This document shows, piece after piece, positions 23,573-53,200 of a DNA stretch of 64,000 nucleotides. How positions within the stretch are numbered: position 1 is the stretch's first letter; each line of letters begins with the position of its first letter. The notes beneath the pieces are model-generated. The model made no database searches. It had not been told where the DNA came from and saw only the letters and a list, made by a program, of their open reading frames with translations. The translations under genes were made by a program, and so were the position numbers. Source of the DNA: Pocillopora damicornis (lineage: Eukaryota); contig NW_020845054.1 of NCBI RefSeq assembly GCF_003704095.1, positions 124,001 to 188,000 of the forward strand, written 5' to 3'.

Positions 23573-26500
23573 TTAATCACTGGTTCCATAGAGTGTTAAC
23601 ACCCATTTTGACACTGTGCCTGCATATCCTTTGGCTGAATCAGAGCCTTCATCCTCCTGTTGCAATAAACTATCTAGATCACCCTCGTCTTCAGCGACTG
23701 GGAACACTTGATCACGCATGTAATCTTTTCCAAACCGGCCATGATGTATCTCATCATGATAGCTGTCGTAGTCATCCATGATCTCATCCCGGCGTGCTTT
23801 CAACAGGTCATGTTGTATAAGAACCTTCTCCCTTTCCTCAACATCTGGTTTTGATGGTGCACTTGAAGACTTCTTGTCATGGTGGAATCTTAGGATCCAT
23901 GTTCCTTTAGGGGACTCATCCCAGAAGTGCACAGTCATGAAAGCCCAGTCATTCAGTCCAAATGTGTCCTTGTCATTGCGGCGAACAGAAAGTAACTGAC
24001 TTGTCATTTTTCCTGGGGAGGTGAGATCAATGCTGATATCACCACGGAATGCCTTGGATAATCTGAAGCTGACAGTGACCTGTACGTGCTCTAGTTTCTG
24101 GATGTCACATGCATCTGTGTTGAGGCTCAACTCCAGAGTACCTCGAATTGGAATATACGGATCCTTTATAGGGCCAATTACTGAACAATTCTGCTGTTCC
24201 CCAACTGGCATCCAATTCACTGCTTCACTCACCATTTTGGCAGCATTAAGACGACCAAATCCAAACTTGTGATTCACCAACAAACCTGCTGCATTCTCAA
24301 CCCATCCTTCATCTTTTGGACTGGTCTTCAATGCCGTTTTCACAACAATGTGTTGAAGATCACGCCAGGTCAGATTTTGGTTTGCTTCCAGAACCAAAGC
24401 AAAGATACCTGAAGCCAGTGGAGCAGCTGATGAAGTGCCACGGAACCTTGTGGTGCACTTGTGCTTAAGATCAGTGGTGACTAAGTCAGCTTCACTGGAG
24501 CCACCCCGGTGAGTGTCTCCTGTGTAGGTTACTGCCATTGTAGATGAACACTGTTCATCATAGTAAGTGGAGAGGCCATATCGACTGACGGCTCCAATAG
24601 ATATCGTATAGATACTAGATGTGTAGCCATCTGCATTACAATCATCATCGGCAAGACCTCCATTACCAGTAGCCCAAACAAATATACTTCCTTTCCCTGG
24701 AGAGAAATAATAAACATTTTCAGGTATTCTTATTGTAGTGATGGGGTATTTGAGGATTTCTTCATAGTAAAAACAGGGAAGTGTTTGCACTATCAGACAC
24801 TTGCTTTATAGTGGCAGCCGACTACAAAAACCATTTACACCCTAACATCAGTATGCATATTCTCCATACTGTTCTCTATACATTTCCTAAGGCATGGACA
24901 AGGACAATTTGTTCAACAATCAAGAGCCCCTTTAGTTGGTGATCATTTCCTTTATTCTCATGACCCTAACTTCTGACTCAGTAGTGATATTGCGAAGAGA
25001 AATTAGATGCTTATCAACCTTAGGGCTTAGAGGGTTAAAACCTGAAGACAGTCTCACTTACAACCTTCTCACTCTGGACAGTCCTCAATTTCCAATTGAT
25101 TAGTCACTCTTAATTTATATTATCTTCTGCTGGTTGAAACAGTAAGGAAAGTATCAAAATAAAAAAGGAGGCTTGAAGAAAAAACAAAATGTAGTTTTCC
25201 CATAAGCATTAAATAGATAGACACAGCTGTGTGGAAAGGGAAGTTTTCCATTTTGTGTTTCAAGCTGACATGCTGTCAGATCAGTAAACTTAATTATCAC
25301 TACTTATTTGTGATGGCTTCATTTAAGCTCAGCGGTCAAAAGTTAAGAAAAGCGTTGGCTGAATTTCATTCACTCTAAGACAATGAGCGCTTTATTTAGA
25401 GCTGTGTTGTTTTACCCATTACAAAACAGTAACTAAGAACTAAGGCATTTCTGCCAGCAATGAGCCCTGTGATTTTCAATTCTTTTTCTATCAGTGTATT
25501 TATGTTAACAGTACAAGGGCCTGCAGCTGTTGTGTAAGGAAAATAATTCTTAGAAAACATCTATGGTAAAAACATTTTGCTGTGGTTTTAAAAGCATCAG
25601 CTAACCTTTAAAGTAGAAAACTCTTTAACGAAAAAAAAAGGTTAAAGAACTTCCGACTTCGAATATTGAGCCTCGATACAGGTTCGATAATACAGCAATA
25701 ATGATTCTTAATGATAACCCCTTAATTTTCACTCTCATTTTCAGCGAAGAGCATTGGCAATATCAAAACAATGTCGTTCTTAATTTAATTTGTAATGACA
25801 AACGAAGGTTTCCTTCCTTATTTCCTTTTGTGTACAATAGAAAAGCTGTGAACGATTTTAATGCGAGTGGGAGATCTACGAAATAACATACGTCAAGAGA
25901 ACTTTTAGACACCCACGCATACTTAGTGAACCTCCGGAATATAAAATACGGAATATTAGTAGAAAGAAAAATATAAATCCTTAAATTTTAAGTTAAAAAG
26001 AGAGCCATATGAAAATTATTTCAGAAAATACAGCACAAAATATTCAATCGAAAAAAACCACTCCGATATAATAAATCTAGTTTCTGTGATAATCAAAACA
26101 AAACCTGGCTCACAGGTTTAAATAATTAATGACGATCATGCATTCAACTTTCTGAATACTAAATCTGACACAAGCGATCTAAAGTTGATTTATTTTACAT
26201 GAAAAACATTAACTTGATTTGCCTCGTAAAATCTTTTAAGTAAAATATTTCTCCCGATGGACGTTGACAAGAACTAATGAATCATCTTTATGTAGGAAAA
26301 TTAAGTTTACATGGCTGTTGCCAAATTAGTTTAGCTTACCTCCGCGACCGTACTTAGCTCCATCTTCGAACGCTTGCCTTCCCAACGGTCCTGGCCTGCC
26401 AAAAGTTTTTCCGTCGTCTTTCGGCCCCCAACAATTACTGTAAATATCGATGTAATCACGTCGAAAGCCTAAAGCGCTTGCTTCCAATAAATCTGTTGCC

Positions 26501-27324
26501 GTACCGTCGAGCATTCGAATTCCGCCAAGATTTACGTTAAAAGCTACTCCGACTCCGCATTCGTTGTTATCTTCTTGAGCGCCTACTTCCCCAGCGCATT
26601 TCGTACCGTGCGCGTTATACGGATCGCTGTCGTTCGGAAATGGATCGTCATCATCGTCATTTAGGTCTTTACTTGCGTGTGGATCATAGTTTCTTTTCAA
26701 ATCGGGATGTGTGTGATCTAAACCATCGTCAAGAATGCTGACAACAACCCCTTTACCTGTTATACCGCGACGCCAAACATCGAGTACCCCTATATCAGCT
26801 CCGACTAAATGTTCATCATTTTGACCCCAGTTCACCAAATACCATTGCCTTTCCCATCCAGGATCATTAAATATTCTCTTGTATCGCTGTTCTCGGTATT
26901 TCCTTTCTAATTCTCGTTCTCTTAGGTAACTCTCTGGCAAGAAGTCGCGCTTGTTTCGTTCTAGAACGCGCTGTTGTTCGGCCCATACGATCCTTGGATG
27001 ATCGTTGAGTTGACGAGTTCTCTCTGTCGCTCGTCGCTTCAAACGAGCGCTTGTTCCTTCGTGCATGAACTTGAAAATACGGGGCAAGCTACCAATTCTA
27101 CCATTGTGTTTCAAATTAAAATTTCTCGCTATTTCGTCAGCAAGGTTGGAGTCGTCTTCGTCTAATTCTACCGCCCAGATATTTGTGAACAGAGGCCTAT
27201 CGTCTTCTCGGAGGTCACCGAGATGCTCATAATCTTGAAATTCTTCGATTTCATGCTGAAAGACAGGTAGAATCAAAACTGCTACAAATAGTAGCGACGT
27301 GAAAAGAAGTTTTCTAAGAATCAT
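23573..27324 (-). CDS. Soluble subtilisin/kexin-like proprotein convertase, paralog A; exons 27324-26340 and 24696-23573; P domain with large insertion
   Basis: Signal peptide, prodomain ending RNKR, catalytic Asp (ILDDG), His (HGTKCAGEV), oxyanion Asn (GNGG), Ser (GTSSAAP), P domain (LEHVQV, RGDI, FMTVHFWDESPKG, LYGT). No Cys-rich or TM region. Confidence 0.93.
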
Positions 27325-31986: not shown

Positions 31987-32046
31987 TGAATCCCCTACGA
32001 CGATCCCCTCCTAGAAGATTTTTACTTTGACCCGCTATCATTAGAT

Positions 32047-35000
32047 TCAGGCGGTACCATACATAACAAGAGACCAATTTCTAACGCACCCAGCTATATG
32101 CCCTTGAAGTGACTTTGAATGTGAACACATTGACGACTCGTCAGAAGCTACATTAATGGGTTGTCTTGGTCCTTTTACTGACTTCATATAATCTTCCTTA
32201 AACCGTCCATGAGTAAGCTCGCGCTGGAAACTGGGTTGGTCTTCGCTCCGCTGAGGAAACTTTTCGTGACGTTTTTCATACGATCGCTTTGACAGCTTCA
32301 TGTAATCTTCCTTAAAGCGACCATGGGAAAGATCATTTGCGATGCTCGGTTCGTCTCTGGATTCTCCTTCGTCAAAAAATCTGTCGTGGCGTCTTGGAGA
32401 GTAGTCGTCTTCAGACTGAAAAAAAAACAAAAGATAACAATTTGTAACGTAATTCTTTGTATATATGTATTTGAAACTAAATGTCAAAGGTTATTCAAAG
32501 TTAGAGTTAATTTTTTGGAATTGTCTTTTTACCGAAATATATAAGCAACTTGTTCGTCGTACGTAATAATCTGAAAATTTATGAGGCGCTAACAAGCTCG
32601 TAATCCCACGTAAGAAAACTTCAAACTTTGGCTTAAAATCTACACCTTTTATTGGTTCCAAAGTGTGGAATTCCTTACCAGATGAATCACGCTCAACGAT
32701 AATTCTTAAGGTATTTAAGAATGCTGTAAGAGAGCTACATTTGTAATGCACGGTCTTCTGAGATTTCTCCCTCTGTTATAATTTTAAGAGTTAGAATTGT
32801 TCATTTAATAAAAGTAGTTAGAAAATTAGTTATTAACTGATTATTTTCGATATCCTGAATTGTTGTTTTTTTGGTTATTTTCTTATACTTTTCACGGTAT
32901 ATTAGCATGTGCTGCTTGGGGCCTTAATCAGCCTCATCAACCTGAGTCGAAATAAAGTTACTTACTTACTAAGTTTTCCTCCTCTTAGCAAAATCGCGCC
33001 GCCCTTTCAACCAATCAGATGTAGATCTAAAACCAATATTGTGGCTTAGTCACACATGTTTTCATCCAAAAATATACCATTTTATTACCTTCTCATCTCG
33101 GATTTTCACGGTCCACTCGCCTCGAGGGTTCTCGTCCCAGAATTCCACAGTCATGAAAGGCCAGTATGCTAATCGTGTTCCGTCGTCTCCTGGCCTCTTG
33201 GCCAGCAGTCGCGAAGTGGTGCCGCTGGGCGAGATGAGATCGATCACCAGGTCCCCCCGGCGACGGTGGTCTATTGATACGTTGAACTGAACGTGTTCTA
33301 GTTTTCCGATGTCTTCGTTGTCATTGATGAGCTATTTGTGATCAGAGATGATGAGGTTAGGGCATGGAAATGAGAAGCGACTTGGAATTGATCGATCAAT
33401 TCAGTAAACAACATTTTTACCTTCAGTTCCACCTCTCCCTTGGATGGTAAAGTTGCTGTGTCAGGTGTCAACAGTCCGCGGAGTGTGTATTTCAGCTGAG
33501 TACCGACATGTTCCCATTCCTTTCCTGCATTAATTAAATCTTCCGCATTTAATACACCAAACCCATAGGAACGACTGTATTTATGCCCAGCACCATTCTG
33601 CAAGACAACAAAAGACAGGAAGTGAGCAGGTTCTGAGGTTTAACTGCTGAGACTATTAAATAACAAGAACGGATCTATTCATCTGCGCTGGAAGGAAACG
33701 GGAAAACTGTTACAATTCAGTGTTGTTCGAGTCTTCCTTACTGAGACACTGCCTTAGGATAACTGAAAGATGATTTACCGTGCTCCATGAAGGGCTGTCA
33801 GGCTCATTTTTCCGCGCAGTTTGAACAACCAAGTGTTGCATATCTCGCCAAGTGAGCTCAGGATTTGCCTCCAAAACCAGCGCAAAGATTCCAGCTGCTA
33901 AGGGAGCCGCACAGGATGTCCCAGAAAACGATGTCACACACTTGTGAAACAGAGAAGTAGTTACAAGATGGCTGTAGGACTCTCGCTTACTGCACTGCAA
34001 ACCAACATCCCCGGTGAAGACCACGCCCATGGTTGAGGGGCAGCTCTCGTCGTAAAACGTTTTGCATCCACTGGCGCTCACAGAGGCGATAGACAGAGTG
34101 TAGATACTTGACGTATAACCGTCGCAGCTACAATCATCGTAACTGGCTCCACCATTGCCAGTGGCCCAGATATACAAAACTCCCTTCCCTTGAAAAAAAA
34201 AAGAACATATTTCTATAAGTGTTTTTTTTTTCTTTTCTGCTATGAGATTATAAACTGTTCATAATCTCTTGGTTTTTGCATATTCAAAGACAACGTGGCT
34301 AAGAGATCAATGAACAGGTCCCCGGATGGAAAGGTCCCGATCGGAGATCTAGTCCGGCTCATCATCTCTTTTCCTTGGACAAGACACTTTATTTACACAT
34401 TGCCTCAGTTTCCACCGTATCTAGTCGACCTGATCGCCTGTTCGCCTGTATCATCCAATTACAGCTTAGCATAACAGTTCCTGAGGTGACGCATATCTAG
34501 CAGAACTTATCGCCTGAAGAGTGAAGAAGACTCACAGTATGTAGTGCATTCGAAACGTCTCGATCCTCTTCGGAAGGGATTGCATAATAATAATAACTTT
34601 TTTAATCTCCTCAAAGAGGCTTTTCAGCTTAATTTACAATGTCAAATATCTAAAACTTAGTTTTCCAAAAATACCCCTAAAAATGCTGTTTTAAACTCAT
34701 CTGGGAGACTATTCCACAGCTTTTGGCCTCTGAAAGGAAATGCGCGCTGACCTGCAGCCGTCCTACAGAGTGGTAAATGTAGGCGGTCCCTATTCCTAGT
34801 GTTGCAGTTGTGCATTTCCTATCTGGTTTTAAACTTCTGACAAAGATATGGAGGTGCAAGTCCATTTAAGCAAGTTGCTTCATAATTGGCAGCCACTGTA
34901 ACTGCTTAAGAATAGGTGTAACATGATCAAATTTCCTCGTTCCAGAAACTATCCGGGCTGCAAAGTTTATCGTGAGACATCATAGCAAGTTATTTGCCAA

Positions 35001-38000
35001 GATGACTAACCGCAACCATTTTGCTTTATAATATATATAATAACCTTCACTTGACGCGAAAATAGGCACGGGTATTTGTCCGTGGACATCATCTGTTCCG
35101 AAATGAGAACAGGTTTCCGAGGGGGAAGCATCGAGGAAAACCGTCAGCTACGAAAGTGCTACGAAGGTGCAACCGTGAACCAACGAGAAGTTTTTTACCC
35201 ATCAGGGTGTTCGTAGTATCCGGCTTAGTTATTTTATGAAAACTAATATCTGTTGGTTCTTCCACCATGCTACTGGTAATTTCAAACATCACTTTTGTGG
35301 TAATTTTCATGCATAGAACAAATTGATACAAATTTAAGGCAATAGCATTTAAAGTTTTGTTTGTCTTCAATTTACAGTCAAGCAGGATATAAAAAAATTG
35401 TCTTTTTTGGTTGATTTTGTCCTTAAAATGAACTCAAACGTCAAGCCTATCCCGCGTCAAACTAGTTCGGAAGCTCAAGCAAAGAGAAAAATGTTCTGTA
35501 CTTAACAACATTTAATTCCATGCCATGCCTGTCCAAGTTTGCGCACGCAGTTCGCAACACAATTGCCAGAACGTTTGCGGGTTCTGAAATCCGACGGGAA
35601 GACCAAAGAAATGGTCGAATCTATTTTGTACTGAGAAGAGCGTTTTTTTCTTAGAAATCGACTTTTTGTGATCGGTAAAAACATAGAAATTATATTTGGC
35701 ATGATAAACTGACGACGTTCATTTTACACTGTGGGATAAATGCATTTGAGACTAAAACATCCACCAGCTGAAATTAAATCTGAGTGAGAAAAAAAAGGAA
35801 AGATCAAAGGTTGAATAGGAGCATTTTCTAGGTTTCAGTTAATATTTTCCGTTCCATAGTAGCCTGGGTAATTTTCTCTTTTATTCTGCTACCTTGAACA
35901 GCAATTTGTGCGTCGAGTACAATTACGGCTGGCGAAATTCAAGTTATTTGGAAAAAGGTGTCAATTTTAGCGTTGTTCTGGGCATAAAAAATCTTTGGAA
36001 AGAATGCTTAGTCATTAAGTGAAAAAAAAACCTGGAAAATTCATATTTTCGTCACGGCGAGGAAACTTTCTGCCCAGCAGAAAACTAAATTTTCCTTTAG
36101 TTCCAAAACCACTTTCTTTTAGTACATTTTGCAAAAAGGTTTGAAAATAATAAAAGATGCTTTCGTTGCAAGACGGTTGATTGAGAAATCGCTTGAGGCA
36201 TCAACAAACTGGAGCCTTAAAAATTTTTGTGGTGATAGCATTTTGCATCGCTGGTTGGCCGTCTTTGATTATTTTGTCTCCTGGCAAAAACAGAGAAACA
36301 GTCTTCGTCAGTCCGTGAATGAAAAAAACAACAAGGACTTCATGTGCACGAACCTCATTTGCAAATACCTTAATTAAACTCCAAAAGTACGATAAGAAAT
36401 AATACAGCTCTCGTCCTTTCGTAGAAAAATACAAAGCGTGGTTGTTTTTGGTGCCGAAAAAAAACGTCAGAGAAAAATACAGAAAGTCGATCACAGAAAG
36501 GAAATTTAAGCAACAGCATTCGTGTCTTTTAGATTTTTGAAATTGAAACTCCAATTACACCAGCTGTTCTTTGTCGGTTTTGAACTAATAAAAAACTTGT
36601 AATAAAATATGTTTTTTGTTCATTGTGGTGTAAGATACTGAGGTCATCTTTGTTCGTTTGTCTTACGATAGAGTCACTTTTGATGTTGATCGCGACGTTT
36701 CGACTGCAGTACTGCTAGTCTTCATCTGGCGTTGTCTCTCTATCGTGAGACAAACGAACAAAGTTCATCTCCAATAAAAAACTTGTTCAAATAAAGCAGT
36801 TCCTTATCCGTCATTTTATAAGGGCTTTGTCTGAAATATTACGCATTAATCTTCTTAAAATCTTTGCCAAATTAAAATAAGGTGACTCCCTTGTTTACAT
36901 GAATTTTTATTCAGCAGTTTCTCTAATTCGTTTGTTATTAGCTGCCAACTCGTTACGGCTCTCGAAATATTAAGCCTTTCAGTTTCCTTGGAATTTTTGC
37001 GTGAACAAAGCGCAAGATAAAAACAGTTTATACGGAAATTTAGATTAGCAAGTAAAATGCATTGTTTCTTAATGTCGCTATTGTCGTGACAACTCAAGGT
37101 CACCGTTTTATACAATACTTACCCATGCACATATTAGTATTTGTCATCAAAGCTCCTGCAATAATTATTCAACCGGTCTCACTTAAATTCAACTCGTGAG
37201 CAAACCCGCGTATCTAATTAAACGCCATCTGTTTCCTGGCTTTAAAAAAACACAGCAAAGAATTATAACACTCGCAGGAAAGATAAACGAACAGTTTCAT
37301 AACTGTTGATCTTTACATCGACTTGAAAATTGAGTAAATGTATACTGACCATCTCTTCCTTCTCGAATGCACTTCTCCATAGCACCGCTTCCAAGTTTCT
37401 CGGGTTTGCCAAATGTTTTTCCGTCATCTTTAGGCCCCCAAGATGCACTAAAAATGTCGATGTAATCGCAGTTGTATCCCAAAGCTTCTGCCTCAATTTG
37501 GTCCGTAATGGTTCCGTCTAGCATTCGTATACCACCAATTTTTGCGTTGAATGCAACTCCTACACCACAAATATTATTATCCGCTTCGGCGGCGACTTCC
37601 CCGGCGCACTTTGTTCCGTGATCGTTGGAAAGATTGCTATCATCTGGCGTTGGATCATGATCGACTCCAACACTAGTTTTATTGTTTACGTCTAAGCTCG
37701 CAGCCTCGTCGTAATTTTTACTCAAGTCGGGGTGAGTATGATCCAACCCGTCGTCAACAATACTCACCACAATTCCTTTACCTGTGTACCCCATTCTCCA
37801 AGCAGACAAAACACCTAGGTTTCCTCTGGTGTCAGCAGCGTCTAACGGACCCATATACCATTGATTTTTCCACTGCGGGTCGTTGAAATATCTGCGATTT
37901 CTCTCGGCGCGTTGCACAAGCATTACCGCTTCATCCCAGGTGTTGAAACCGCGTTTGTGTCTAAATAGTAGAGTTTGTTGTTCAGTCCACTTCACGCGCG

Positions 38001-38271
38001 GGTGATTTAATAGCGGTTGTGTATGATGCTCACTACTTCGTCTCTGGCGGCTCTCCGATCTTTCGTGTACAAACGAGAAATATCCAGGTAAGTTCGCTAT
38101 CGGTCCTGCGTTCTTAAATCCAAGACTTTCCGCTATGCTATGCGCTAATTCTTCATCGTGTGAGTCTAGTTCAACTGCCCAAGTATTTGTGTATATTTCG
38201 CCATCTCTATCACTCTCACAATATCCTGTGCTCAGACTCACTAAAAACACAAACAGTACCACATGCACCAT
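32047..38271 (-). CDS. Soluble subtilisin/kexin-like proprotein convertase, paralog B; exons 38271-37350, 34188-33779, 33597-33421, 33331-33089, 32415-32047; P domain with large insertion
   Basis: Signal peptide, prodomain ending [67 protein letters not shown]. All junctions are GT-AG and in phase. Confidence 0.92.
32500..32971 (+). mobile_element. 3' end of a CR1/L2-clade LINE in convertase B intron 4
   Basis: Decayed ORF2 C-terminus [32 protein letters not shown]...FKNAV, then a 3' UTR ending aataaag-ttacttacttact (tandem tail). Confidence 0.75.
34285..34420 (+). mobile_element. Degenerate tRNA-head/CORE-type SINE fragment
   Basis: gtggctaag head and CORE-like cttggacaagacactttatttacacattgcctc. 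Similar to 46570-46790. Confidence 0.4.
34509..34564 (+). ncRNA. Degenerate minimal type I hammerhead ribozyme-like motif
   Basis: CTGAAGA (34514-34520)...GAAAC-GTC (34552-34559), with atcg/cgat as potential stem I. Stem II is poorly paired. Confidence 0.3.
34585..34968 (-). mobile_element. 3' end of an L2/Crack-type LINE in convertase B intron 1
   Basis: Minus-strand translation [27 protein letters not shown]...LNGLAPPYL...[11 protein letters not shown]...[17 protein letters not shown], then a ctgaaaagcc...ggag 3' end and a (TAT)n tail. Confidence 0.8.
36587..36786 (-). mobile_element. Small element between 14-bp direct repeats, with 26-bp inverted arms enclosing a hammerhead-like core (Penelope/retrozyme-like)
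   Basis: aataaaaaacttgt at 36587-36600 and 36773-36786. Arms at 36648-36673 and 36738-36763. Minus strand reads cgc-CAGATGA-A-GAC...GTC-GAAAC-GTC-gcg. Confidence 0.6.
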
Positions 38272-41490: not shown

Positions 41491-44400
41491 CTAGAAGACG
41501 AAACGATTGAAAGGGGTTGTAAATCCTGGCCCGCCTCCACAGCTCCCTGGGGGACCCTTGCTAGGGTCATCATCGTCGTCGTCAGGGGGCTGATGGAAGT
41601 TTGACCAAGCTTTTCGCTTAGCAGTGTTCATGGCTTGACGCTCTCGCTCCTGTAAAAAAGAAAAAAAAGATACAAAATCCTTATGACGAGTTTGTCCATC
41701 GCTGACTCGAAAATTTGTTTGCACTGTTTCTGGGCATTGTTTGGAAGACACGGTGGCTTAAGACTGGTTTTCATTAGCCACGAAGTTGAAGAAGTTAGAT
41801 AACGCAAGAGCATATCCGGCCTCGAGAAAATCGAAACCGGAGTTGTAAACAGAACAATATAAGTTTGAAGGTATTGGAGTCGGAAGAATCAGTACGGTTC
41901 TATTTCATTCCAATTCCGCTTAAGACCCAGTCGCATATGATCCAGTGAAGACGAGATTGTCGAAGTCGCAAGTAAAAGCAAAAGATCCAACCAATCACGA
42001 TGCGAGTTGTCAGGCCAACCGATGGCTTTTGACTCCTTCAATTTCGTCCGCAGAGTCACAAGCAGTATCGGTACTCTGCTTCTAAATCAGCTGGTTTGAT
42101 TTGCACCGGATCGTATCGCTCTACGCTTCTGACAACGACTCCGAGGCTGACGTTAATAAAACCAGCCTTAATTCACGAACCAGGGCAAGAGCCAACGCGC
42201 ATGTACGTGAATTGCCCCTCGCGTGTCTCGATCTTGCCTTCGACTCCAACGTTAGTAAAAAAACTAGCCTCAATACACCGCGCACTGTACTCCGGACCGA
42301 GAGGCGCGATTCACAAACGAGGGCAGGGGCAGATGCGTGCACGTGTGAATAGCCCCGCCTGCTTGCCTTCAAATCGTTAAAAATTGCGCCTGATCTGCAC
42401 GCAAATAAAGTTTGAAGTCAAACAAGTTAGATTGACTCACCTGCAAGTATAAGAGGTTATCGCGATTGACCATGTCCGCCAGCTCCTGCCTGATCTCACC
42501 GCCAACCAAATTATCTTGCACAGAATCACCACTGTTTTCTACGGGAATGACTGCAGCACGAAAAGAGCTGACTCGTTTATAGATCAACACATACGGAGTA
42601 TCCTTAGGGAAACGCTTCGATACATCAGCAAACGAACTGAACGCCGAGTAAGACACGCGACTGTCATTAAACAGATACCACGTGTCTTGATCATCGGTTC
42701 TAGAACTTGAACTCTTGTCGCTTTCTCCTCCGATCAAATGCACGCTAGATCGTGCATAGCAGTAATAATGTCCACTCTCCGATGACGTCCCGGAGTGAAC
42801 GATAACCGAACACAGCGCGTAAACAATATCTGCTGTGAATGTTTCCTCGCTTAAAGACAACGAATTATCGCTGCTAGAGCTGTCAACGACATTGTCATGC
42901 TCTTGCTTTGTCCTTTTAGACTTGAAACAAGAGTGGCTGACGATTTCATCGTTCTTACTGTCATTAACATCTGGGACGCTGTTTCTCGCCTCTCTTTCTA
43001 TCTTATCATCACCTCCTTTGAGGTGAATTCGCGGTAATCTTAAAACTGTAGGATAAGACACACTTTGTAGTATCTTCGACCTTTGTTGGGTCTTCACATT
43101 GTAAGCGAACCTCTTCAGAGTCAACACGAGGAATTCTGAGGCCTTGGAAATGCTAACGGTACGTTCAGCATCCTGTAAACTGTGACAATGCTCGCAATGA
43201 TATTGATTAGATCCTTCAAGAATTTCAGGTTCAAAAAAGTACTTCAACATCTCTGTTAGTGATATGTGTGGAGCATCAGCTCGAACGCCAGGCTCGCGAA
43301 ATTTCGACGAAACACTCGAACCAGCTGAAAAAGGCATTGAGCTCTCTGCTGAGGTCGAACTGTGTGATGAACTTGGAGCCACAGCGTCGCTATCTTCAAC
43401 TGACTTTTGCGCTAAGCCGGTGGCAGACACATTGTGAGTAATATCACCACCTTTCAGACTTCTATCGGAGCTCACAGTTGAATTCACAGGTTTTTCGTCA
43501 TGTTCGATCGGTTGTTTATCATCTGACGTCAGTCCATCGAGCTGCTCGGAGAACATCCTTCTCTCTAACTCACCAGCCTGTGGAAAAGCCAGTGGTAGGT
43601 CTGTGAACACTTCCTCTCTGCAAGAAGTGTTATTACACCTCCTACAGCACAGGCACACCGTCAGCTTTCCAGTAAAGGTCTCTTCTACGAGCGAGGTCCT
43701 TGGCGACCCTTCGTCGTTGCTGTTGTTTTGTGATTTTTCCTCCTCGCTAAGTCTGTCAAGAAGAAACTTGAGAAATTCTGAGCAGTCTTGCTGGGTCCCC
43801 TGTGCAAACCACGGAGGTCTCGCTACATGAAGGAACTTCGACGGGGCAAAGGCAGATCTCTGTAAAAATAAAAATAAAACAAAACAAAACAAGAACAAGG
43901 ATTGCGTCAAATTAATATTCTGTCCAAATTCATTAAAATAATCGGGACCGCCATGGAGCCAATCCAGAACTCTTCAACCAGAGTCTAGCACGTTATTATC
44001 TTGGCTCGATTTGAGTTGGTTTTGAGTTTCTTGACTCGATTTGGTTGATTTTCCAGTTCTCCTTTGGGCCTTAAATCCTCGCGAGAAAGAAAGAAACAAT
44101 AAAACAACAACAACAAACATAAAACTAATGACTTTAAATATATGAAAAATCACTATGCAGTTCACATATATAGCATATATGCGAACTGCGGATAAAGAAA
44201 TGCTACTTAAGCAGTAGCGAACATAAAGAAAAAAAACCTGAAAAATTGCTTCTCTATTAGTGTTCATTACTGCGAAGATCGTTTCCATGTTCAAACCCTT
44301 ACAAAGGATAATCCTCCAACTAAATTCTAGTATTTTACTACAAGCACATGTTGCGGGAGATTTTACCTGTGTTAGAGAGAGGAAGGCAAACACTTGTTGC

Positions 44401-47400
44401 AGGTGATGCAAGACAGGTTGATTATGATCGCTGTGATGGCCGAATATCATGAAACGGAACCTGCAAATACAGATCCGTTTTACCTTATCTCTTTGATCAA
44501 TTACTTCTGAGCATCAGACTTTCAAGGGTGATATGCTTAGGAATTAAATTTAAAAAAATAATCACAACTCCCTAATTTTGAAACTAAGTACAGTCATTCG
44601 AAACCTTTGAATTAAATGAATTTTGTTCCTTCTTTTTTACTTATAGGGCGGTACGCTTCACGTTTTGGCAAAATAAATCCTTAAATTCAATTTACGTTTT
44701 TCAGCTCCTCTCCAAGCCTCTACAGAATCTTTCTCACAAAATTAAGAGCATTTGGCATACATTGTATCTCAGCAATGAATTTCAACTTTGTTGAGCCTCT
44801 TCCCAAAATTGTTCTGACAATTGTCATTATTGGCATAGCAACACCTGAGGTTCAAGCCCTCTGCCCTCCTACTCACTGGATTTTTTCTCAGTTGTCCCGA
44901 GTGCAGTTTCTTGGCTAAGCTTTGTATACAGCCAGCTGGTCTGTATCCCGCCAGTTGGGGTTTTTAAACACTAAATTTATTTACAATGTTTTAATGTACT
45001 TGTAATGTCCTTGTTAAGACCTGTTGGGGGATTGGTCAGTTAACTGTACATACATACAAACGTACAAGTGATCATGACATTGACAACTTACTCGTCAAGC
45101 ATGTAGAGTGCCTGTAACACACTGTTCATGTAACAAGTGTTGCCTAGGTTAGCTAAGCCAGTTTTTCCCGTTTCTGATTTTGGTGCAAAGCCAGGAAGTG
45201 GAATATTGACAGCTTGTGCAGACCAAGCACTTTGAGCTAGCCACTTCTTGATCATCACCTCTGAAGGTTTAGGTAAATCCTGGTAAAAAGAAGGTCATGC
45301 ATAGATAGTATACATAAAAAAAAGGATGAGAATGCAAGAGCGATAAATTCAGAAAGAAGTAACAATCAAAAGTACAAAAGGGTACAGCTTATTGGAACAT
45401 TATTAGTTACTCTGACCACAAATTACACTGATTTCCATACAAGTAGCTGCAAAGTTTAATCTGGTTTCTGTGAAATGGAGCACTTGGTTTCTTGCTACTC
45501 AGATAGGATACTAATCTGTTGTTGGTTATTCCTCCCCCCATGAATTTTATCAGTTCATTGTTGGTTACACCTCCCCCACTCTACATTTTAGCAAGTATTC
45601 CAAACAGCTACTTCTGGAGAAGGCAGGGTGCTGTGACCCTTGTAAGGGCTCCAAACTGTACATCTCCACATGGAATCCAGCAAACTAAAACTAATCAATC
45701 AATAGACTTTATCTTAAGAGGGGAGCATGTGAACTGATGAACTTGTGGCCCTCTCTAAGATAGAACTTAAAATATAAAAATGAACAATGATCTACATTAG
45801 AAATGTTACATACTGCAAAATGAAATAAAAAATAACTATAGGTTATACATCTCTCTATATATACATACAATATTATTTAGTGTTTTTCTAAAAAGGAAAT
45901 CAGTAAATTGTTTTAATAAATAAAGAAACTAAGATGGCGTGCTGAAGTTGTTATTTTCTTTCTGTCTTTCTAAAAGAGTGTTTATCAATTCCTTTTATAA
46001 ACTTGTAGTGTCCTTAGCTAATATTAGTACATCTCCCACCAGCTTGTTAGATTTCCAAAACAATACCTGTAGACAGTCAACAACTGGTCCATACAGTTCA
46101 GGAAACCCTGTATGTTGGTACATTAGACAGTGCATAAGTTCAGCAAGTGTTTGTAAATTAGTTTGTGAGGAACCACTGTTTTCCTTCTTTAGAGTCTGCA
46201 CAAGGCTGGGTACTAAAACAACAATCTGAAAAAAAAAACCACAAAACAAAACAAAAAACAAGCAATTGTTTGACTTTTTCAGATTAACTTTGTAGAGAAT
46301 AGACACTTCGTTCTTGGATTCTTTGTTATAAAATGAAAAAAAGCCACATATTCCAGCAGACGGGTCCAGACAATGACAAGTTATTCCCCTAAGCTAGAAA
46401 CACTATGATATGTTAAGAGAAACGTTGATCATTTGGTATACATCCTGACACTAAAACACTCAGTAGAATAGTCACTTGTTCAACTTGAAAAAAGGGAATG
46501 CAGACAGGCACATAAGTGTACATATAAGGCTAACTCAATTATCTCCAAAAGCTTCTTTATATGAGGATTACTGGTCTTTTTTTGGACACTGGTCCACCAC
46601 AGGCTACTATGGCATTTAGTCACAGTTTCCCTGACAGTTTCCGTACTGGCCTGGGTAGAGAGAATCAATGTGAGAGCTAAGTGTCTTTCCCAGCGACAAA
46701 ATGCTGACTCTGGCCACAACTCAAACCCAGACCTCTCAATTAGTAACCCAGCAATGTAATCATTAAGCAAATTTGTCTCCCATGGAATTACTTAATAAGA
46801 GAATAATCTAACTGAAGAGCATAAAATCTAGTGACTAAACTAATGTCATATGAGGAAATTTGACTCAAAGCTTTGTCTTTGCTTTTTCCTGTTATACCAA
46901 CCCAGAAACAGAAATCTTTACCTCATGAAATGCTTGAGGAGAGTGTTGAAAGCTCAGCAACATATGAGAGAGGACAACCATAGTACTTCCACGGACAATG
47001 GGGAACAACAAACGACTGAAAACCTGCAGAAAAACAAAATAAAAGAATATCACTATTAACAAGAGTCATGTTACAGAGTCCCAAAAAACGAGTCCATGGA
47101 AAGCTGGTCAGCTCTCAAAATAAATAAACGTGGTGAATTATGCAAGCAGATTTTGGTGCCCAACAGAACCCACTTTTTGTTGACTATGTGTGTCATAAAA
47201 TGCTCAAAATTTTCAGTTGATATACTTAGATTAGCCAAAGCAACTTTTGGGATAAAGAGTGAGGCAGAGGAAGAAAAAACAAAACTGCAATGTTACTGAA
47301 AACAAATATGAAACTGAGATTGAAACAGAATTGAGCTCAACTAAAAACCATGGATGAAATAGAATGACAACTCATAGACTACTGTCTTTGACATTAAATT

Positions 47401-48635
47401 AGAACCCTGTTAATATGACCACCACTGTCCCTCTGTCCTTTACCTCCCAAGATCTGATTATTAATTCTCCCTTCTAGTTGCTACACATTTTCTTGTAAAT
47501 TAGATATTATACAGTATTATAGGGAAAATTTACATGTTAATCACTTCTGGGAGCTTAAGGGTTAAGGCTTAACAGGGTTGAACGGTGAGGAAACCCAAAG
47601 TGATTGTATTGATAAAATTCTGGGTATAAAGCTGGCTTCCACCCCTCTCACAAATTATAGGTTTAAAAAAAAGCAGTGAAATCTTGCTCAGGACAGGCAT
47701 CTTACCTGGGACACTTCCTTAAGTGTAACAGAAATGAGAATGGAATGTTTCCCATTGCTTGCCAAAGCCTTTAAAAACCCAATAATCCATTGATCAACCT
47801 TTTTTGCTCCAGGCCATGACAACCATTTGATCATTCGCGTAAGGGAATGAGCTAGGCTCTCATCACTAAGTAAAGGGTTTGAAGCTGCAAGGTTAGTTGC
47901 AGAGTCTATTGTATCAGTGGAAAAATACTGCACAACAGAAGCAAGTGCTACTGATGGACTGTCTCCTACTTTGGAAATAATCTTAAAAATCTCCGTTAAA
48001 ACTGGAAAGAGCAGGGCTTGATTCTTTGTCCACATCTTGTTTAAGAGAGCCCCAATGACTGCACCATTTTGAATGCATGCTGTCATTTCTTCTTTTGAAG
48101 TTTTAGGCAGCTCAGTTTTGCTTAAAGCTCTAAGCAGTGACAAGTTAAACTGGATTAGATTTTCGCCAACCGGCCAACAGTGGTTATACTCGATGAGCAA
48201 ACGTCCCACAGCCGCACAAAAGTCCGTGTTTAAATTCTTTTCCGCCCAGATATGAGCCCTGTGGCGAATTACTGTGTACATTGAAAATATCTGTGGTGCG
48301 TGTTGAACGAGATCAAGGGAGGTGCGTAGATAATCCACAAAACTCACTGATAAATTTTCGCGTTCAGCAAGAAAAGATAGGAGAAAGCTTTCTGTGAAAA
48401 ACTTTTGAAATACATCCTTTTGGCGTTTAGCCCACGTGGTGAGCAATAGTCGACCAGTTTCTTTCAAAAATTGCGAGTTTTCATCTGTCATCCATTCAGT
48501 TCCAATTTCAAAGATAGATCTGTTTTGATCCTCTGGGACATTTCCATTGAGTTTTGAGACCAGCTGTTGAATAAGAGACTTCTTGACGCTTTCAGTGTGA
48601 TCTGAACTTACGATTCCTCTCAGTATTTGGTCCAT
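41491..48635 (-). CDS. USP38: Ubiquitin carboxyl-terminal hydrolase USP38/USP35 ortholog; exons 48635-47706, 47023-46922, 46225-46067, 45279-45092, 44460-44367, 43859-42441, 41649-41491
   Basis: N-terminus MDQILRGIVSSDH, HEAT-like region (WLSWP, FQHSPQAFH), Cys box GLANLGNTCYMNSVLQAL, QQDCSEFL, His box HSGTSSESGHYY, FNDSRVS, C-terminal DDDD...PPGSCGGG...NRFVF. Confidence 0.92.
41758..42171. mobile_element. Non-autonomous DNA transposon (Harbinger-like ends) in the last USP intron
   Basis: ttaagactggttttcattag at the left and ttaataaaaccagccttaa at the right are inverted. A second degenerate right end lies near 42241-42275. Confidence 0.55.
44830..45066 (+). mobile_element. tRNA-derived SINE with L2-like 3' tail
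   Basis: B-box-like gaggttcaagccc, body cagccagctggtctgtatcccgccagttgggg, tail ggggattggtcagttaa followed by (taca)n. Confidence 0.45.
46570..46790 (-). mobile_element. tRNA-head CORE-type SINE
   Basis: Minus strand gagaggtctgggtttgagt (B-box-like), then ctgggaaagacacttagctctcacattgattctctctacccagg (CORE-like). Confidence 0.5.
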
Positions 48636-50238
48636 GATGGCGCAAAAAACAAGTTTAAAAATAGCATTTGTTGATGAACCTTCGTCGTTTTAATTTTAGT
48701 TCTAACTACATACCCGGATGTAACGCGGTCAAGAGGTCTGGGAGTGCAACACAAAGTCACCAGCTTGTCCCCCAGTGTACCCTAGTCGGGATTGGGGACA
48801 TTGGGGCGATTGACATTAATTAATTGTTTTTTGTTTCTGTATGCATATGCTTTCTTCTAGAGAACATCAGCTGATTTTGGTTATCTGCTCTCATTGCCTT
48901 TAAAAGACCTTTAAAATCATTACGGTCATCAGTGTTTTTAACGAAATACCCACTGTGTCTTTCTCAACAGACGGCGCTTACACAGTTTTATCGTTTTTTC
49001 CCGTCGGGATGTAGCTAATGTCTCGAATTAAAGATCTTCCGACATCTCGCAAATAGGTCAATATCAGCGAAGCCTAATTAATCTTAAGTTACCTCTCCCA
49101 AAAGTATCGTATTTCTCAGAAAAAAAGATAAGCATGCAATTCCGAAAAATAACTCTGATTTATTGCGAAAATTTTGCACCAATCTTAAAATAAACTCTTT
49201 ATTTGTAAAAATATATCCATTGAACTTCATATGTACAGAGAATCTAAAGATAAACTGAACTTGTTTAAGAACAATATCTTCCTCTTCATATGGTCATTTA
49301 AAATTGCAAATATCGGATTAGAACTATTCTGATTGAATGCTTTTCCCCATTTTCTGTGATATCCACTTCATTTCCGACTATCAAATGTGGCGCCAGAAAA
49401 TCGGGCTCAATGAAGTCTTTGCTGATAAAATAAGTACTCAGATCAAAGCATCTGAAGAGCTCTTTAAAATCACCCTCATAATTATCTTTTATGTACACTT
49501 CTCGAAGCTTCAACGATTCGATGTTCTTAGACGCGGGAAAATTCATCAGGGATTTGTTTTCCTTTCAAGAAAACAAAACAGATTTAGGACACCCTCGTGT
49601 TTTGAATAAAAGCCCAGGTTTCAGAGTGAATAGTTTAGGACAATATTTACAAATCAACACCCTTAAACCTATTTGTGTACATCGCTTGCAAGAGCTTTGT
49701 GGTCTTTTGTATAAGCAAGGTCGCAACTAATTAACCAATCGCATTTCTAGTTTTAAAATTAACTTTTCAATCATGACGCTTCCACGGTGTCCGATTCCTA
49801 TTATCCCATGATTGTTAACAAACCCCCAAGAAGAACAAGAGCATGTAAAACTTGTCTTATGGCACCCCTCGTGGTATTCTCGAGCTAAAAATATTTGCCA
49901 CGACAGCGTTAATTAGCTAGCAAAGAAGCAAGTTTGTTCATTTTGAACTGACTTAGCGAAGGCAAACAGCGATTATCCGTGGAGAACATGCCTGGGGCCA
50001 ATATCTGGCGCACTGGGGCAGAACAGTAAATGACAACTTATCAAGAACACGTCAAATTTTCATACAATATAAATCGATATCAGTTCCCAGGGGACCCGGT
50101 TCGAGCAAAAAAAAACCGTGGAACTAAATGGAATTTTGGACGTTGACAATGTCTTCTGGCTTTACTCTACTTTTGAAACATGTTTAACATTCTTTGACAA
50201 GTAGTGTTGTTTTGAGGGACGAGAACGAGAAGCGAATC

Positions 50239-53200
50239 ATGGCGCGGAATGGCCGCGATTGTAGAACGTTCTACTGTCGAGAATGGGTGTTTGAAAAAAT
50301 TCAAACTTGTGTTGAACGAAGGAAGCAACAAGAAGATACTAAAACGAAAGGGGCTTTTATTTTAGGAGGACCTGGCTCGGGAAAAACGACAATTTTACGC
50401 GAACTTGTGTCTCCGACAACTAAAGAAGGTGTTCAAACGGAGTTGGTAAAGAAAGTTGTTGCTTCTCATTTCTGCCAAGCCCAAAATGCAATTTCTGTTT
50501 CTGTAGCAGACTTCATCTTAAATCTCGCCAGGCAACTCGCTAAAGCAGAGGAGCTGAAGGCATACGCTGCCAAATTCAACGACCCCCAGATTCAAAATCA
50601 CCTCAAAAGTGAACAGTGTATTCGAAATCCAGATCGTTCTTTTAAAGAAGGTATACTACTGCCTCTTAATTCGCTTCCACCGCCTCAGGAAATCTTCTTG
50701 GTCGTGGTGGACGCCATCGATGAATCTTACCTACATTCTTTCGATTCCGGTGTTGCATCTGGCAGCCGAACTGTTGCTGAGTTAATGGCCACACACCACG
50801 ATCTACTCCCCCCTTGGCTCTTTCTGGTGGTCAGTGCAAGAAAGCAATCGAAAACAGTCACTAGGATGTTTACAGGATTTCGAAAGTTCACTTTAGACGA
50901 TCTTCGGAAAGCACATGTGGTTAAGGACATTCAACAGTACATTTTGAATCGCTTAGACGACGAGCCCAGTTTAAGGAAACATTTAACCAGGGAAACGGCA
51001 GAAGCATTTAACCAGCTTCACATCAAAAGCAATGGTTGTCTTCTTTATTTGGAAAAATTGTTGGATGGAGTGGTCGATGAATTTTTCACCTTGGATGAGA
51101 CCCAGGACATTCCAGGCACACTGTCTGGTCTGTACCTGTGGCTGTGTAATAGGTTATTCACAGAGGAACAAGTCGACAAGATCAGGTCGGTCTTGAATGT
51201 TATTTTAGCTGCTCAAAGGCCTTTAACTGACTCTGAAATGTTCCATGCAGTGTGGACAAAAGACACAGATCTAACTGTGGAAGACTTTTTGGAAACACTT
51301 GACTTGATGTCACATCACATTCTCATGGATGACAATGGTGTTAAAAGCATATCCCATCTGTCCTTTGCTGAGTGGCTCTTGGATGCAAAGCACTGCACGC
51401 CAAAGTTTCTTTGCAACCCAGGAGATGGGCATGCCATGCTAGCATTGCATTACACTCAACTCTCTCAGAAACAACAGCTGACTCATCCACACCAACTTGC
51501 ATTCCACTTGAGCCGTGCATCTTTTAGGGAGTTTTTCACACAAGACCACCTCGCTCTCTGGCTTCTGTGGAGTGGAACCCAAATCTCAGACATCCAACTC
51601 AACACAGATGCCCTGAATCAAGAGGTTGCCCGGCTGTTACTAAATGCTGGTGCCAAGGTAAATGAACTTGAAGAACAAGCTGCTTTGCTTCCCTTTGCAC
51701 CAGAGACAGAAGATTCTGTTAAAGCTCTGTTGGAGAAAGGAACATCTGTTGATCGTGTTGACAGTTCTGGTAGAACATTGCTATGCAATGCTGCATTCAA
51801 TGGCAGCGTTGATGTAGTACGGCTTCTTATTAAACATGGAGCAAATGTCAACTTTTCAGACACTTCTGGACAGTCTCCGCTAATGTTAGCATCAAGACAA
51901 GGGCATAATGAAATTGTGTACCTTCTTGTGAACTGTGGTGCATCAGTTAATCACTGTGCAGATGATGGATGCACTGCTTTGAGGGCTGCAGCCTCGGGTG
52001 GGCACACTGATGTTGTTTCTGTTCTTCTGGATCACTCTGCAGAAGTAGACTTGGCTGACGATGATAAACGCACTGCATTACGCGGTGCATCATGGGGTGG
52101 TCACAGCGATGTTGTATTACAACTACTTCAGCATGGGGCAAACCCTAATCTTACTGACAAAGAAGGAAGGACAGCATTAATTGCCGCAGCTTACATGGGT
52201 CACAAGAAAGTTGTAGAAATACTGCTGGATCATAAAGGAGAGATAAATCATGCCGACAATGATGGAAGAACTGCTTTAGCTGTAACGGTTCTTTGTGTTT
52301 CGTCTAGTGAGAATCATGAGGCTGTTGTTGACCTTCTTTTAAGGCGTGGTGCACGAGTTGATCATCCTGATTTTGATGGCTTAACGCCACTATGTGTTGC
52401 TGCTCTTGAGGGATACTTCAATGTTGCCAAGTTATTAGTCAAAGCTGGAGCAGACATAGGACACTGGGACAGAAATGGACGGACACCTCTGTTTGCAGCA
52501 GCTGCTAATGGTCATTGCAACATTGTAGATTTGTTTTTGGCAACTTCAGAAGGTTGGTTCTCTTTTCATTTACAGTAGAATCTTGTAACAGGTAGTATCT
52601 GTAGATATTTACCCTTATCTCTGTTACTATGGGTCTTTGAAAACCTTAATATTCTTGGAATCTGAGTTTGGATTATGGAAAGTCATGGAAATAAATGAAA
52701 ATTATATATTTTTGTGAAGAACAAAGAATAAATGCCTTTGTTAATTGATTTTTTCCTCTTGTTTTGGAACACATCGCTTGATTATAGGTAATGGAAATCA
52801 TCTAAAAGGTCCTGGGAAATTCAGATAAAATAAAAAACGCTTAATGTTTTATATGGCCATTGGATCTATGATTATGATTTAGATTACTTAAGCTGTTAAG
52901 GAAAAAGAAACATTTATCAATTTGATTGTTATTTCAGATAGGAAACCTGACCCTTCAACCTGGAGGTCACCAACATTTTCAATGTTCCGTCCAGATCATA
53001 GTGGTTGGGATCCATTGATGGTAGCTGCCAATCAAGGTAGTGTTTCCTTTATTAACCCTCTGACCCTTAGGGGTGATTAGCATTTAAATTCTCCTAACAA
53101 TATCATCCCTAAATTACACATTAAGGTTATGAGAAATAAGAAAATGACCACCAACCATATAAGCTCTTGATTGTTAAACAAATTCTTCTTGTCAGCACCT

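Follow-up and report, generated by a model that had tools for sequence, protein, structure and literature searches.

Tandem copies of a conserved short motif in a P-domain insertion of anthozoan PC3-like convertases: a putative docking element

Described convertases and the coral locus

How proprotein convertases choose their substrates and how they arrive in secretory granules is still debated. The C-terminal peptide of 7B2, proSAAS, and the C-terminal tail of PC1/3 act on bilaterian convertases, and these segments, together with sorting helices, regulate or sort the neuroendocrine members of the family. Here, we describe two tandem genes for kexin-like proprotein convertases, paralogs A and B, on the (−) strand of a 64,000-nucleotide stretch of the Pocillopora damicornis genome (RefSeq assembly GCF_003704095.1, contig NW_020845054.1, positions 124,001 to 188,000; this whole stretch is the window, and coordinates given below are window positions). 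Both carry a long insertion in the P domain that holds a short motif around H-G-R-F-x-x-D-Y-M, once in A and twice in B. We think that the two units of B are probably tandem repeats of a short linear motif that is found across Anthozoa, lies in a predicted-disordered P-domain insertion, and acts as a putative docking motif on a flexible tether.

The name “PC3-like” reportedly goes back to the Hydra PC3-like cDNAs of Chan et al. in 1992. Proteins annotated as “PC3-like endoprotease variant A” or “variant B” (PCSK1/furin-like) have in common with the two paralogs a signal peptide, an S8 pro-domain with an R-x-K-R site, the catalytic Asp, His, and Ser with the oxyanion Asn, and an RGD-containing P domain. 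Paralogs A and B differ from them in an insertion of 87–107 residues carrying HGR..DYM and in the lack of a C-terminal tail. The PC1/3 tail, 7B2, proSAAS, and the sorting helices of PC1/3, PC2, and CPE (PMC2064127) resemble the coral loop in being charged, largely disordered luminal segments with basic cleavage sites. However, they have no sequence similarity to it, and the coral loop lies inside the P domain rather than after it. Its motif is no more amphipathic than shuffled controls.

A second point of comparison is the crystal structure of furin with the nanobody Nb14, whose epitope includes Asn558–Thr564 and, according to the authors, lies on the surface that is most variable among convertases (PMC5037460). 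The distance from bound Nb14 to the active-site inhibitor is ~19 Å at its shortest, and with Nb14 in place, bulky protein substrates are blocked, whereas small peptides are not (PMC5037460). Like the coral loop, it places protein mass at this hairpin, and it gates bulky substrates without touching the catalytic pockets. Nb14 is, however, an external antibody on human furin, whereas the coral loop is built in and predicted to be disordered, and an effect on substrates is suggested by analogy.

Finally, cnidarian RFamide preprohormones share with the motif loops a G-R-F core, tandem copies, variable spacers, and a species-specific copy number, and what defines a cnidarian preprohormone is that GKR, GKK, or GR(R) comes after each copy (PMC6402141). 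In contrast to these precursors, the motif loops have neither a Gly-Lys/Arg signal nor an N-terminal Gln, their Phe is not invariant, and their units sit inside an enzyme domain.

Two motif copies under strong purifying selection in paralog B

The inserted loop of paralog B occupies the last hairpin of the P domain, between the strand ending RDEK and the last strand. It is highly charged and measures 107 residues (32095–32415, (−) strand), close to the ~110 of an earlier reading made from the sequence alone. That reading had also noted two motif copies with the same 10-residue translation. Both were recovered by direct reading and by script, at 32296–32325 (copy 1) and 32182–32211 (copy 2), and they differ, as it had said, at three synonymous sites (GGT/GGA, CGC/CGG, TAC/TAT) and at no replacement site. 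Of the single-base changes that are possible in the motif codons, 13–14 of 90 (~15%) are silent, so that three random changes would all be silent with P ~0.003. The divergence that it described for the flanks is also evident, since nucleotide identity between the copies is 90% in the motif, compared with 53% over 36 bases upstream and 33% over 18 bases downstream.

The related motif that had been noticed in paralog A reads HGRFGKDYMR (23714–23743, (−) strand). It is preceded by E-I-H and occurs once, in an inserted loop of 87 residues (23884–23624, (−) strand). A pattern search had been proposed as a check. With the degenerate DNA pattern H-G-R-[F/Y]-x-x-[D/E]-Y-M, the whole 234-Mb genome gave three matches, one in A and two in B, and a reversed control of the pattern gave none. 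A profile of the B loops run against 1.84 billion representative proteins yielded ten matches, all of them convertase P-domain loops.

Paralog B orthologues were gathered as 21 other 90%-identity clusters of open reading frames (ORFs) the size of exon 5, the exon that encodes the loop. With identities of 47%–98%, they can be aligned over the whole exon. The motif is neither absent nor freely diverging in related corals: in copy 2, 22/22 B-type sequences have the same H, G, R, F, K, D, Y, and M, and copy 1 is intact in nearly all of those that reach the region. The ratio of nonsynonymous to synonymous rates (dN/dS), calculated by the Nei-Gojobori method (NG86) for eight species (DNA was fetched for seven), is 0.04 for the two motif copies and 0.30 for the remainder of the loop; the last P-domain strand is intermediate at 0.11, and dS is ~1.1 throughout these regions. 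The purifying selection proposed from the sequence of one coral is therefore borne out, and the motif forms a conserved island in a fast-evolving, predicted-disordered context, as is expected of a short linear motif. Three differences among the RNA runs within exon 5 are all replacements in spacers (R8I, R12I, S57R), and none falls in a motif copy. The motif is protein-coding, expressed, and under much stronger purifying selection than its surroundings.

Almost every species keeps copy-specific codons (GGT and CGC in copy 1, GGA in copy 2). This indicates that the copies are orthologous between species and have not been homogenized by gene conversion, and the doubling in B is older than the divergence of these corals. 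A functionless repeat, owing to chance, recent duplication, or gene conversion, might be suspected given that there are only 10 codons and three differences inside one gene. However, both copies persist with their own codons at a dS of ~1.1, and the motif is conserved from octocorals to stony corals. In light of the eight-species dN/dS, the silent-change test, and the genome pattern search, we rejected this explanation and give it practically no chance of being correct.

Throughout one homologue of exon 5 (P0143), H is replaced by Y, R by C, S by F, and P by L. Reads converted by bisulfite (C→T) would be expected to assemble into such a sequence, whereas a real variant would not be expected to show it.

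Expression and splicing

It had been pointed out that the proposal would fall if exon 32415–32047 lay outside the convertase transcript. Assembled RNA contigs from three different studies contain the joints 37349/50|34187/88, 33779|33597, 33421|33331, and 33089|32415, the last of them spliced GT..AG, and this possibility is therefore removed: the exon belongs to the convertase mRNA. A fourth run has the first three joints and one contig that is unspliced over the last intron.

The unspliced contig of run X6 (32000–33110) reads across the whole of that intron (32416–33088), which could reflect intron retention, pre-mRNA, or DNA carry-over. A short stretch in intron 1 of paralog B (36600–36783) stands out in each of the four runs by its very high summed depth of RNA contigs; numerous contig ends are loose there, and one joint is on the opposite strand. 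Its appearance is that of a repeat or mobile element with wide expression.

Age and multiplication of the motif

Among 28 A-type sequences (49%–99% identity), each has one motif copy, and D-E-[I/V]-x-H-G-R-x-x-x-[D/E]-Y-M-R-D is conserved at a level of at least 90%. Upstream, these loops have an acidic start (D-x-E) and then a basic K-A-[R/H]-R, which is followed by D-E-I. The single copy of the A lineage is found in stony corals, sea anemones (Actinia tenebrosa), and octocorals (Dendronephthya, Paramuricea), and the named cluster members from Actinia, Dendronephthya, and Paramuricea are all annotated as “PC3-like endoprotease variant B.” Across Anthozoa, the consensus is roughly [R/H/N]-[D/E]-[I/L/V/F]-x-H-G-R-[F/Y/R/T]-[G/K]-x-[D/E]-Y-M-[R/K]. 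These alignments indicate that the motif has been kept throughout Anthozoa since octocorals and hexacorals diverged.

The motif had been described as older than the duplication that gave rise to A and B, and the A-type and B-type alignments, a tree, and gene order agree with this. In the tree, a branch with a Shimodaira-Hasegawa-like approximate likelihood ratio test (SH-aLRT) value of 92 has all motif-bearing convertases on the same side, and B forms a long branch inside the group, although its exact place is not fixed by this short alignment of the exon-2 region, analyzed by a quick method. In a distant anthozoan, one locus (L022) has the same gene order as the window, from a USP38-like gene to a convertase and then a second convertase. 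Its gene in the B position (P0147) has two exons only and a single copy, L-H-G-R-F-K-G-D-Y-M-K, followed by a second D-Y-M. Given one copy in the A lineage and one copy in this B-position gene, the motif predates the A/B duplication, and the doubling came later, within the B lineage.

Copy number varies between species. One protein (P0128, locus L001) has three copies, and another (P0142) has four, which arose when a block was duplicated; in each pair, the second unit carries D at the Y position. An A-like protein from another group (P0146) has four tandem units of ~25 residues around H-H-G-R-T-G-E-D-Y-M-R-D-E. Copy number thus rose independently several times, to two, three, and four in the B lineage and to four in another.

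Long insertions at the same P-domain hairpin are also found in other cnidarian and myxozoan convertase subfamilies (P0028–P0054, including sequences from Paramuricea and Nematostella). These have different conserved motifs, and they all begin with an acidic D-[M/V/I]-E-[E/D]. One type of insertion has Q-R-V-Q-V-N-A-G-Y-E-N-P with two Cys, and others have conserved R-x-K/R-R sites. “PC3-like variant B” proteins of sharks and rays have a short hairpin at the insertion position.

Basic sites and the possibility of a peptide precursor

Repeated units with basic flanks had suggested a multicopy peptide precursor to the sequence-only reading. The coral sequence does contain KR sites in the spacer that separates its two copies (SKR|S, EKR|H). 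In orthologues, however, the KR after copy 1 becomes AR, GR, TR, or nothing, the EKRH site sits in a lineage-specific insertion of four residues, and no basic residue precedes copy 1. A KR-flanked precursor was rejected because these sites are not conserved. Amidated release had already seemed unlikely given that B lacks the amidation Gly, and its copies indeed end in DYMK. A-type orthologues vary at the Phe position (F/Y/R/T), at the Gly position (G/K), and at the residue after Gly (K/E/G/S). Neither a Gly plus a basic residue after each copy nor conserved processing sites on both sides, as expected of an amidated preprohormone, were found. An RFamide or other amidated peptide was rejected because the Phe, the Gly, and the residue after it are not conserved and B has no Gly; by its sequence, the motif is evidently not an amidated RFamide-type peptide cassette.

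There is a less demanding version, in which the convertase doubles as a precursor and units are freed by cuts at the basic residue that follows DYM and, on the upstream side, at Arg or His, giving nonamidated, possibly sulfated peptides. Short invariant units, fast-evolving spacers, and a copy number of one, two, three, or four depending on the species are the pattern of cnidarian preprohormones (PMC6402141), and D-Y-M is reminiscent of sulfated CCK-8 (PMC6272617). A basic residue follows DYM in nearly all copies, and the boundaries of each P0146 unit read R|DEI...YMR|DEI. Yet a single Lys or Arg with no basic residue at P4 or P6 is a weak convertase site, and excision would cut the P-domain barrel ahead of its last strand. 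In addition to the variable KR sites and the missing upstream basic residue of copy 1, B lacks a Gly-basic signal, and neither the A-type Gly nor the basic residue that follows it in paralog A is conserved. No such peptide was found in the searchable literature. On balance, we consider a precursor role unlikely. A more specific form, in which the loop is cut by its own or the sister convertase and frees one to four conserved, possibly sulfated HGRF..DYM peptides as a signal or a diffusible convertase regulator, is in our estimation a little less likely still. If it were true, it would constitute an enzyme-embedded, nonamidated peptide family as old as Anthozoa.

Predicted structure of the loop

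In an AlphaFold2 model of a full-length protein of the octocoral group (P0017, 60-sequence alignment), the predicted local distance difference test (pLDDT) score is >90 in the core and <50 in the motif region, with a weak helix at the start of the loop (pLDDT 50–60). Exon 5 of paralog B, folded alone, gave a pLDDT of ~53 and a low-confidence helix from the Phe of each copy. It should be noted that the paralog B exons were searched singly and exon 5 was folded on its own, as opposed to being spliced into a full-length B protein. The low scores in the motif region suggest that the motif behaves as a linear motif in a disordered tether.

An amphipathic sorting helix was also considered and rejected, given that the hydrophobic moment of the motif does not exceed the 95th percentile of shuffled loops and that the only helix is weak and of low confidence. 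A search of the ESM Atlas for structural look-alikes of exon 5 gave no usable match.

Alternatively, the motif could be a structural or metal-binding element, either packed against the P domain or coordinating Ca2+ or Zn2+ via His, Asp, and Glu, and kept for folding or stability. The P domain is needed for convertase folding and for calcium and pH behavior (PMC5037460), A-type motifs have H-D-E-[I/V]-H-H, and B has two invariant Cys near the last strand. However, two to four tandem copies with spacers of variable length do not suit a fixed structure, the region is predicted to be disordered, and the His cluster is absent from B. We thus regard this alternative as very unlikely.

Tyrosine sulfation

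Asp at position −1 of the motif Tyr is invariant in B, Asp or Glu is conserved there in A-type sequences, and Glu or Asp is common at −2. By the classical rules, a sulfated Tyr is expected to have a neutral or acidic neighbor at −1 and, within ±5, acidic residues and few basic ones; D-Y-M is the sulfated site of CCK-8 (PMC6272617). The motif resembles that site in having an acidic −1 residue and Met after Tyr, and both pass through the Golgi lumen, where TPST acts. In contrast, the motif context is more basic, and sulfation is here predicted from sequence. The genome encodes a clear TPST orthologue (ORF at L026, E = 2e-76 to human TPST2), and the motif Tyr may be sulfated.

Position on the P domain and a putative docking role

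By sequence alignment, the insertion point falls between furin E556 and A557. A loop of 90–110 residues at the Nb14 hairpin would, by analogy with the nanobody complex, be well placed to gate, recruit to, or occupy the cleft. We therefore return to the reading introduced above, in which the motif is a putative docking element on a flexible tether. The tether would emerge at the P-domain hairpin, where a bound nanobody gates the access of bulky substrates to the furin cleft. The motif would bind a luminal partner, which may be a substrate, a regulator, the granule matrix, or the cleft of the enzyme itself, and binding would tune which substrates the enzyme meets, or its sorting. Extra copies would add avidity, and the conserved [D/E]-Y may be sulfated. 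That the motif is a functional short linear motif under selection, as had been proposed, is supported by the orthologue alignments and dN/dS.

Several points count against a docking role. The AlphaFold2 models (P0017 and exon 5) have no docked pose of the motif, and the hairpin position is an alignment-based transfer from human furin. By the classical sulfation rules (PMC6272617), the surroundings of the Tyr are unfavorable, with basic residues at three places within ±5 (−5, −3, and +2). A homologue search limited to the loop of a full-length A-type protein (P0158) gave six matches, none of them medusozoan, with a length filter that left out most exon-sized ORFs.

A related explanation is a built-in auto-regulator, in which the motif or the nearby basic sites dock in the enzyme's own cleft as a pseudo-substrate or inhibitor, comparable to the action of the 7B2 C-terminal peptide, proSAAS, or the PC1/3 C-terminal tail on bilaterian convertases. 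A shift in pH or a cut in the loop would release the docked element. From a hairpin ~20 Å away, the loop has enough length to span the distance to the cleft, A-type loops keep a minimal convertase site (the K-A-[R/H]-R before D-E-I) upstream of the motif, loops of other cnidarian subfamilies keep R-x-K/R-R sites, A-type motifs are His-rich, and both paralogs lack the C-terminal tail that regulates PC1/3. On the other hand, P2 and P4 of the invariant G-R-[F/Y] are both nonbasic, which makes it a poor ligand for a convertase, the conserved basic site and most His residues are gone from the B lineage, and AlphaFold2 did not dock the motif. We find this explanation doubtful.

In the searchable literature, we found no described P-domain insertion or motif in cnidarian convertases, and a search for the motif string gave no match. 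With the position taken from furin, this clade appears to have swapped the usual C-terminal tail for a long flexible insertion beside the substrate cleft. Should the tethered motif serve in substrate recruitment, in gating of the cleft, or in sorting of the enzyme, nature would have produced an equivalent of the engineered nanobody inhibitors that bind the furin P domain, and the motif would also offer a handle on neuropeptide processing in corals.

Architecture of the convertase pair

The sequences of A and B indicate that they are secreted “PC3-like” kexin-like proprotein convertases (subtilase S8B) of one clade. Paralog A has 702 residues in two exons. Exon 1 (26340–27324, (−) strand) was placed by Pfam matches and by reading its splice donor. 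Exon 2 (23573–24696, (−) strand) encodes the C-terminal half of the catalytic domain, the P domain, the 87-residue loop, the last strand, and the stop codon, all in one exon, and a protein that is 99% identical (P0001) occurs in transcript assemblies.

Paralog B has 706 residues in five exons, with a checked ATG start and introns that are all GT..AG. Exon 1 (37350–38271, (−) strand as for the others) encodes the signal peptide, the S8 pro-domain, and the first half of the catalytic domain with the catalytic Asp and His (Pfam S8_pro-domain and Peptidase_S8; RNA joint to exon 2). Exon 2 (33779–34188) encodes the second half of the catalytic domain, with the oxyanion Asn in ATGNGG and the catalytic Ser in SGTSC (Pfam Peptidase_S8, translation, and RNA joints). 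The end of the catalytic domain and the start of the P domain lie in exon 3 (33421–33597), which is defined by RNA joints 33597|33779 and 33331|33421 in four runs and by tblastn to paralog A. Exon 4 (33089–33331; RNA joints) encodes the P-domain core (PF01483, 84 bits, C1689:157089-157301) and ends exactly at the insertion point. Exon 5 (32047–32415) spans the entire insertion and, after it, the last P-domain strand with the stop codon; the joint 33089|32415 is seen in RNA contigs from runs X1, X4, and X8, and the 3′ untranslated region runs on below 32047. The last strand and stop codon (32047–32094) hold the second of two invariant Cys, as placed by the orthologue alignment and by a match to furin GTLTKFTLVLYGT.

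These two Cys, at residues 97 and 110 of exon 5 (window ~32125–32127 and 32086–32088), are invariant in 22/22 B-type sequences and flank the end of the loop and the last strand. They are absent in A-type proteins, so a B-specific disulfide is possible.

Both paralogs match the S8 pro-domain PF16470 (A, 3e-19; B, 3e-25), which is closed by a basic autocleavage site (RNKR|D in A and RHKR|G in B). Both also match PF00082 and retain the catalytic Asp, His, and Ser (the Ser region of B is SGTSCAAP). The oxyanion Asn (ATGNGG) is present in both, and they are therefore not of the PC2 (PCSK2) type, in which Asp is expected. The P (Homo B) domain follows directly after the catalytic domain (PF01483, 1e-16 in A). 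It contains RGD in both proteins, and the stop codon comes a few residues past its last strand, leaving no C-terminal tail in either. The closest solved relative is furin (E = 4e-74), to which the sequence can be aligned up to E556, and again over the last strand, which aligns to GTLTKFTLVLYGT.

Paralog A has one intron and paralog B has four, the last of them exactly at the loop insertion point. Other P-domain ORFs in the genome (L010, L011, L014) also stop right after the strand that precedes the insertion. In view of the B intron and of these ORF ends, the hot spot for insertions may mark the place of an old intron. The A-type pro-region (window 26900–27000; residues 95–151 of P0158) has RNKR|D and then a linker of ~24 residues that ends in a second site, RYKR|I, directly before the mature F-N-D-P-x-W motif. 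Paralog B lacks this linker.

Neighboring genes

Directly upstream of the convertase pair is a USP38-like deubiquitinase gene (42369–48635, (−) strand) with Usp38-like_N and UCH domains. At 50194–52578 (+ strand), a single ORF of 794 residues encodes a NACHT/TANC1-like AAA ATPase with a winged helix and many ankyrin repeats. An ORF fragment at 7426–7998 (− strand) matches UDP-glycosyltransferase (UDPGT, 8e-21).

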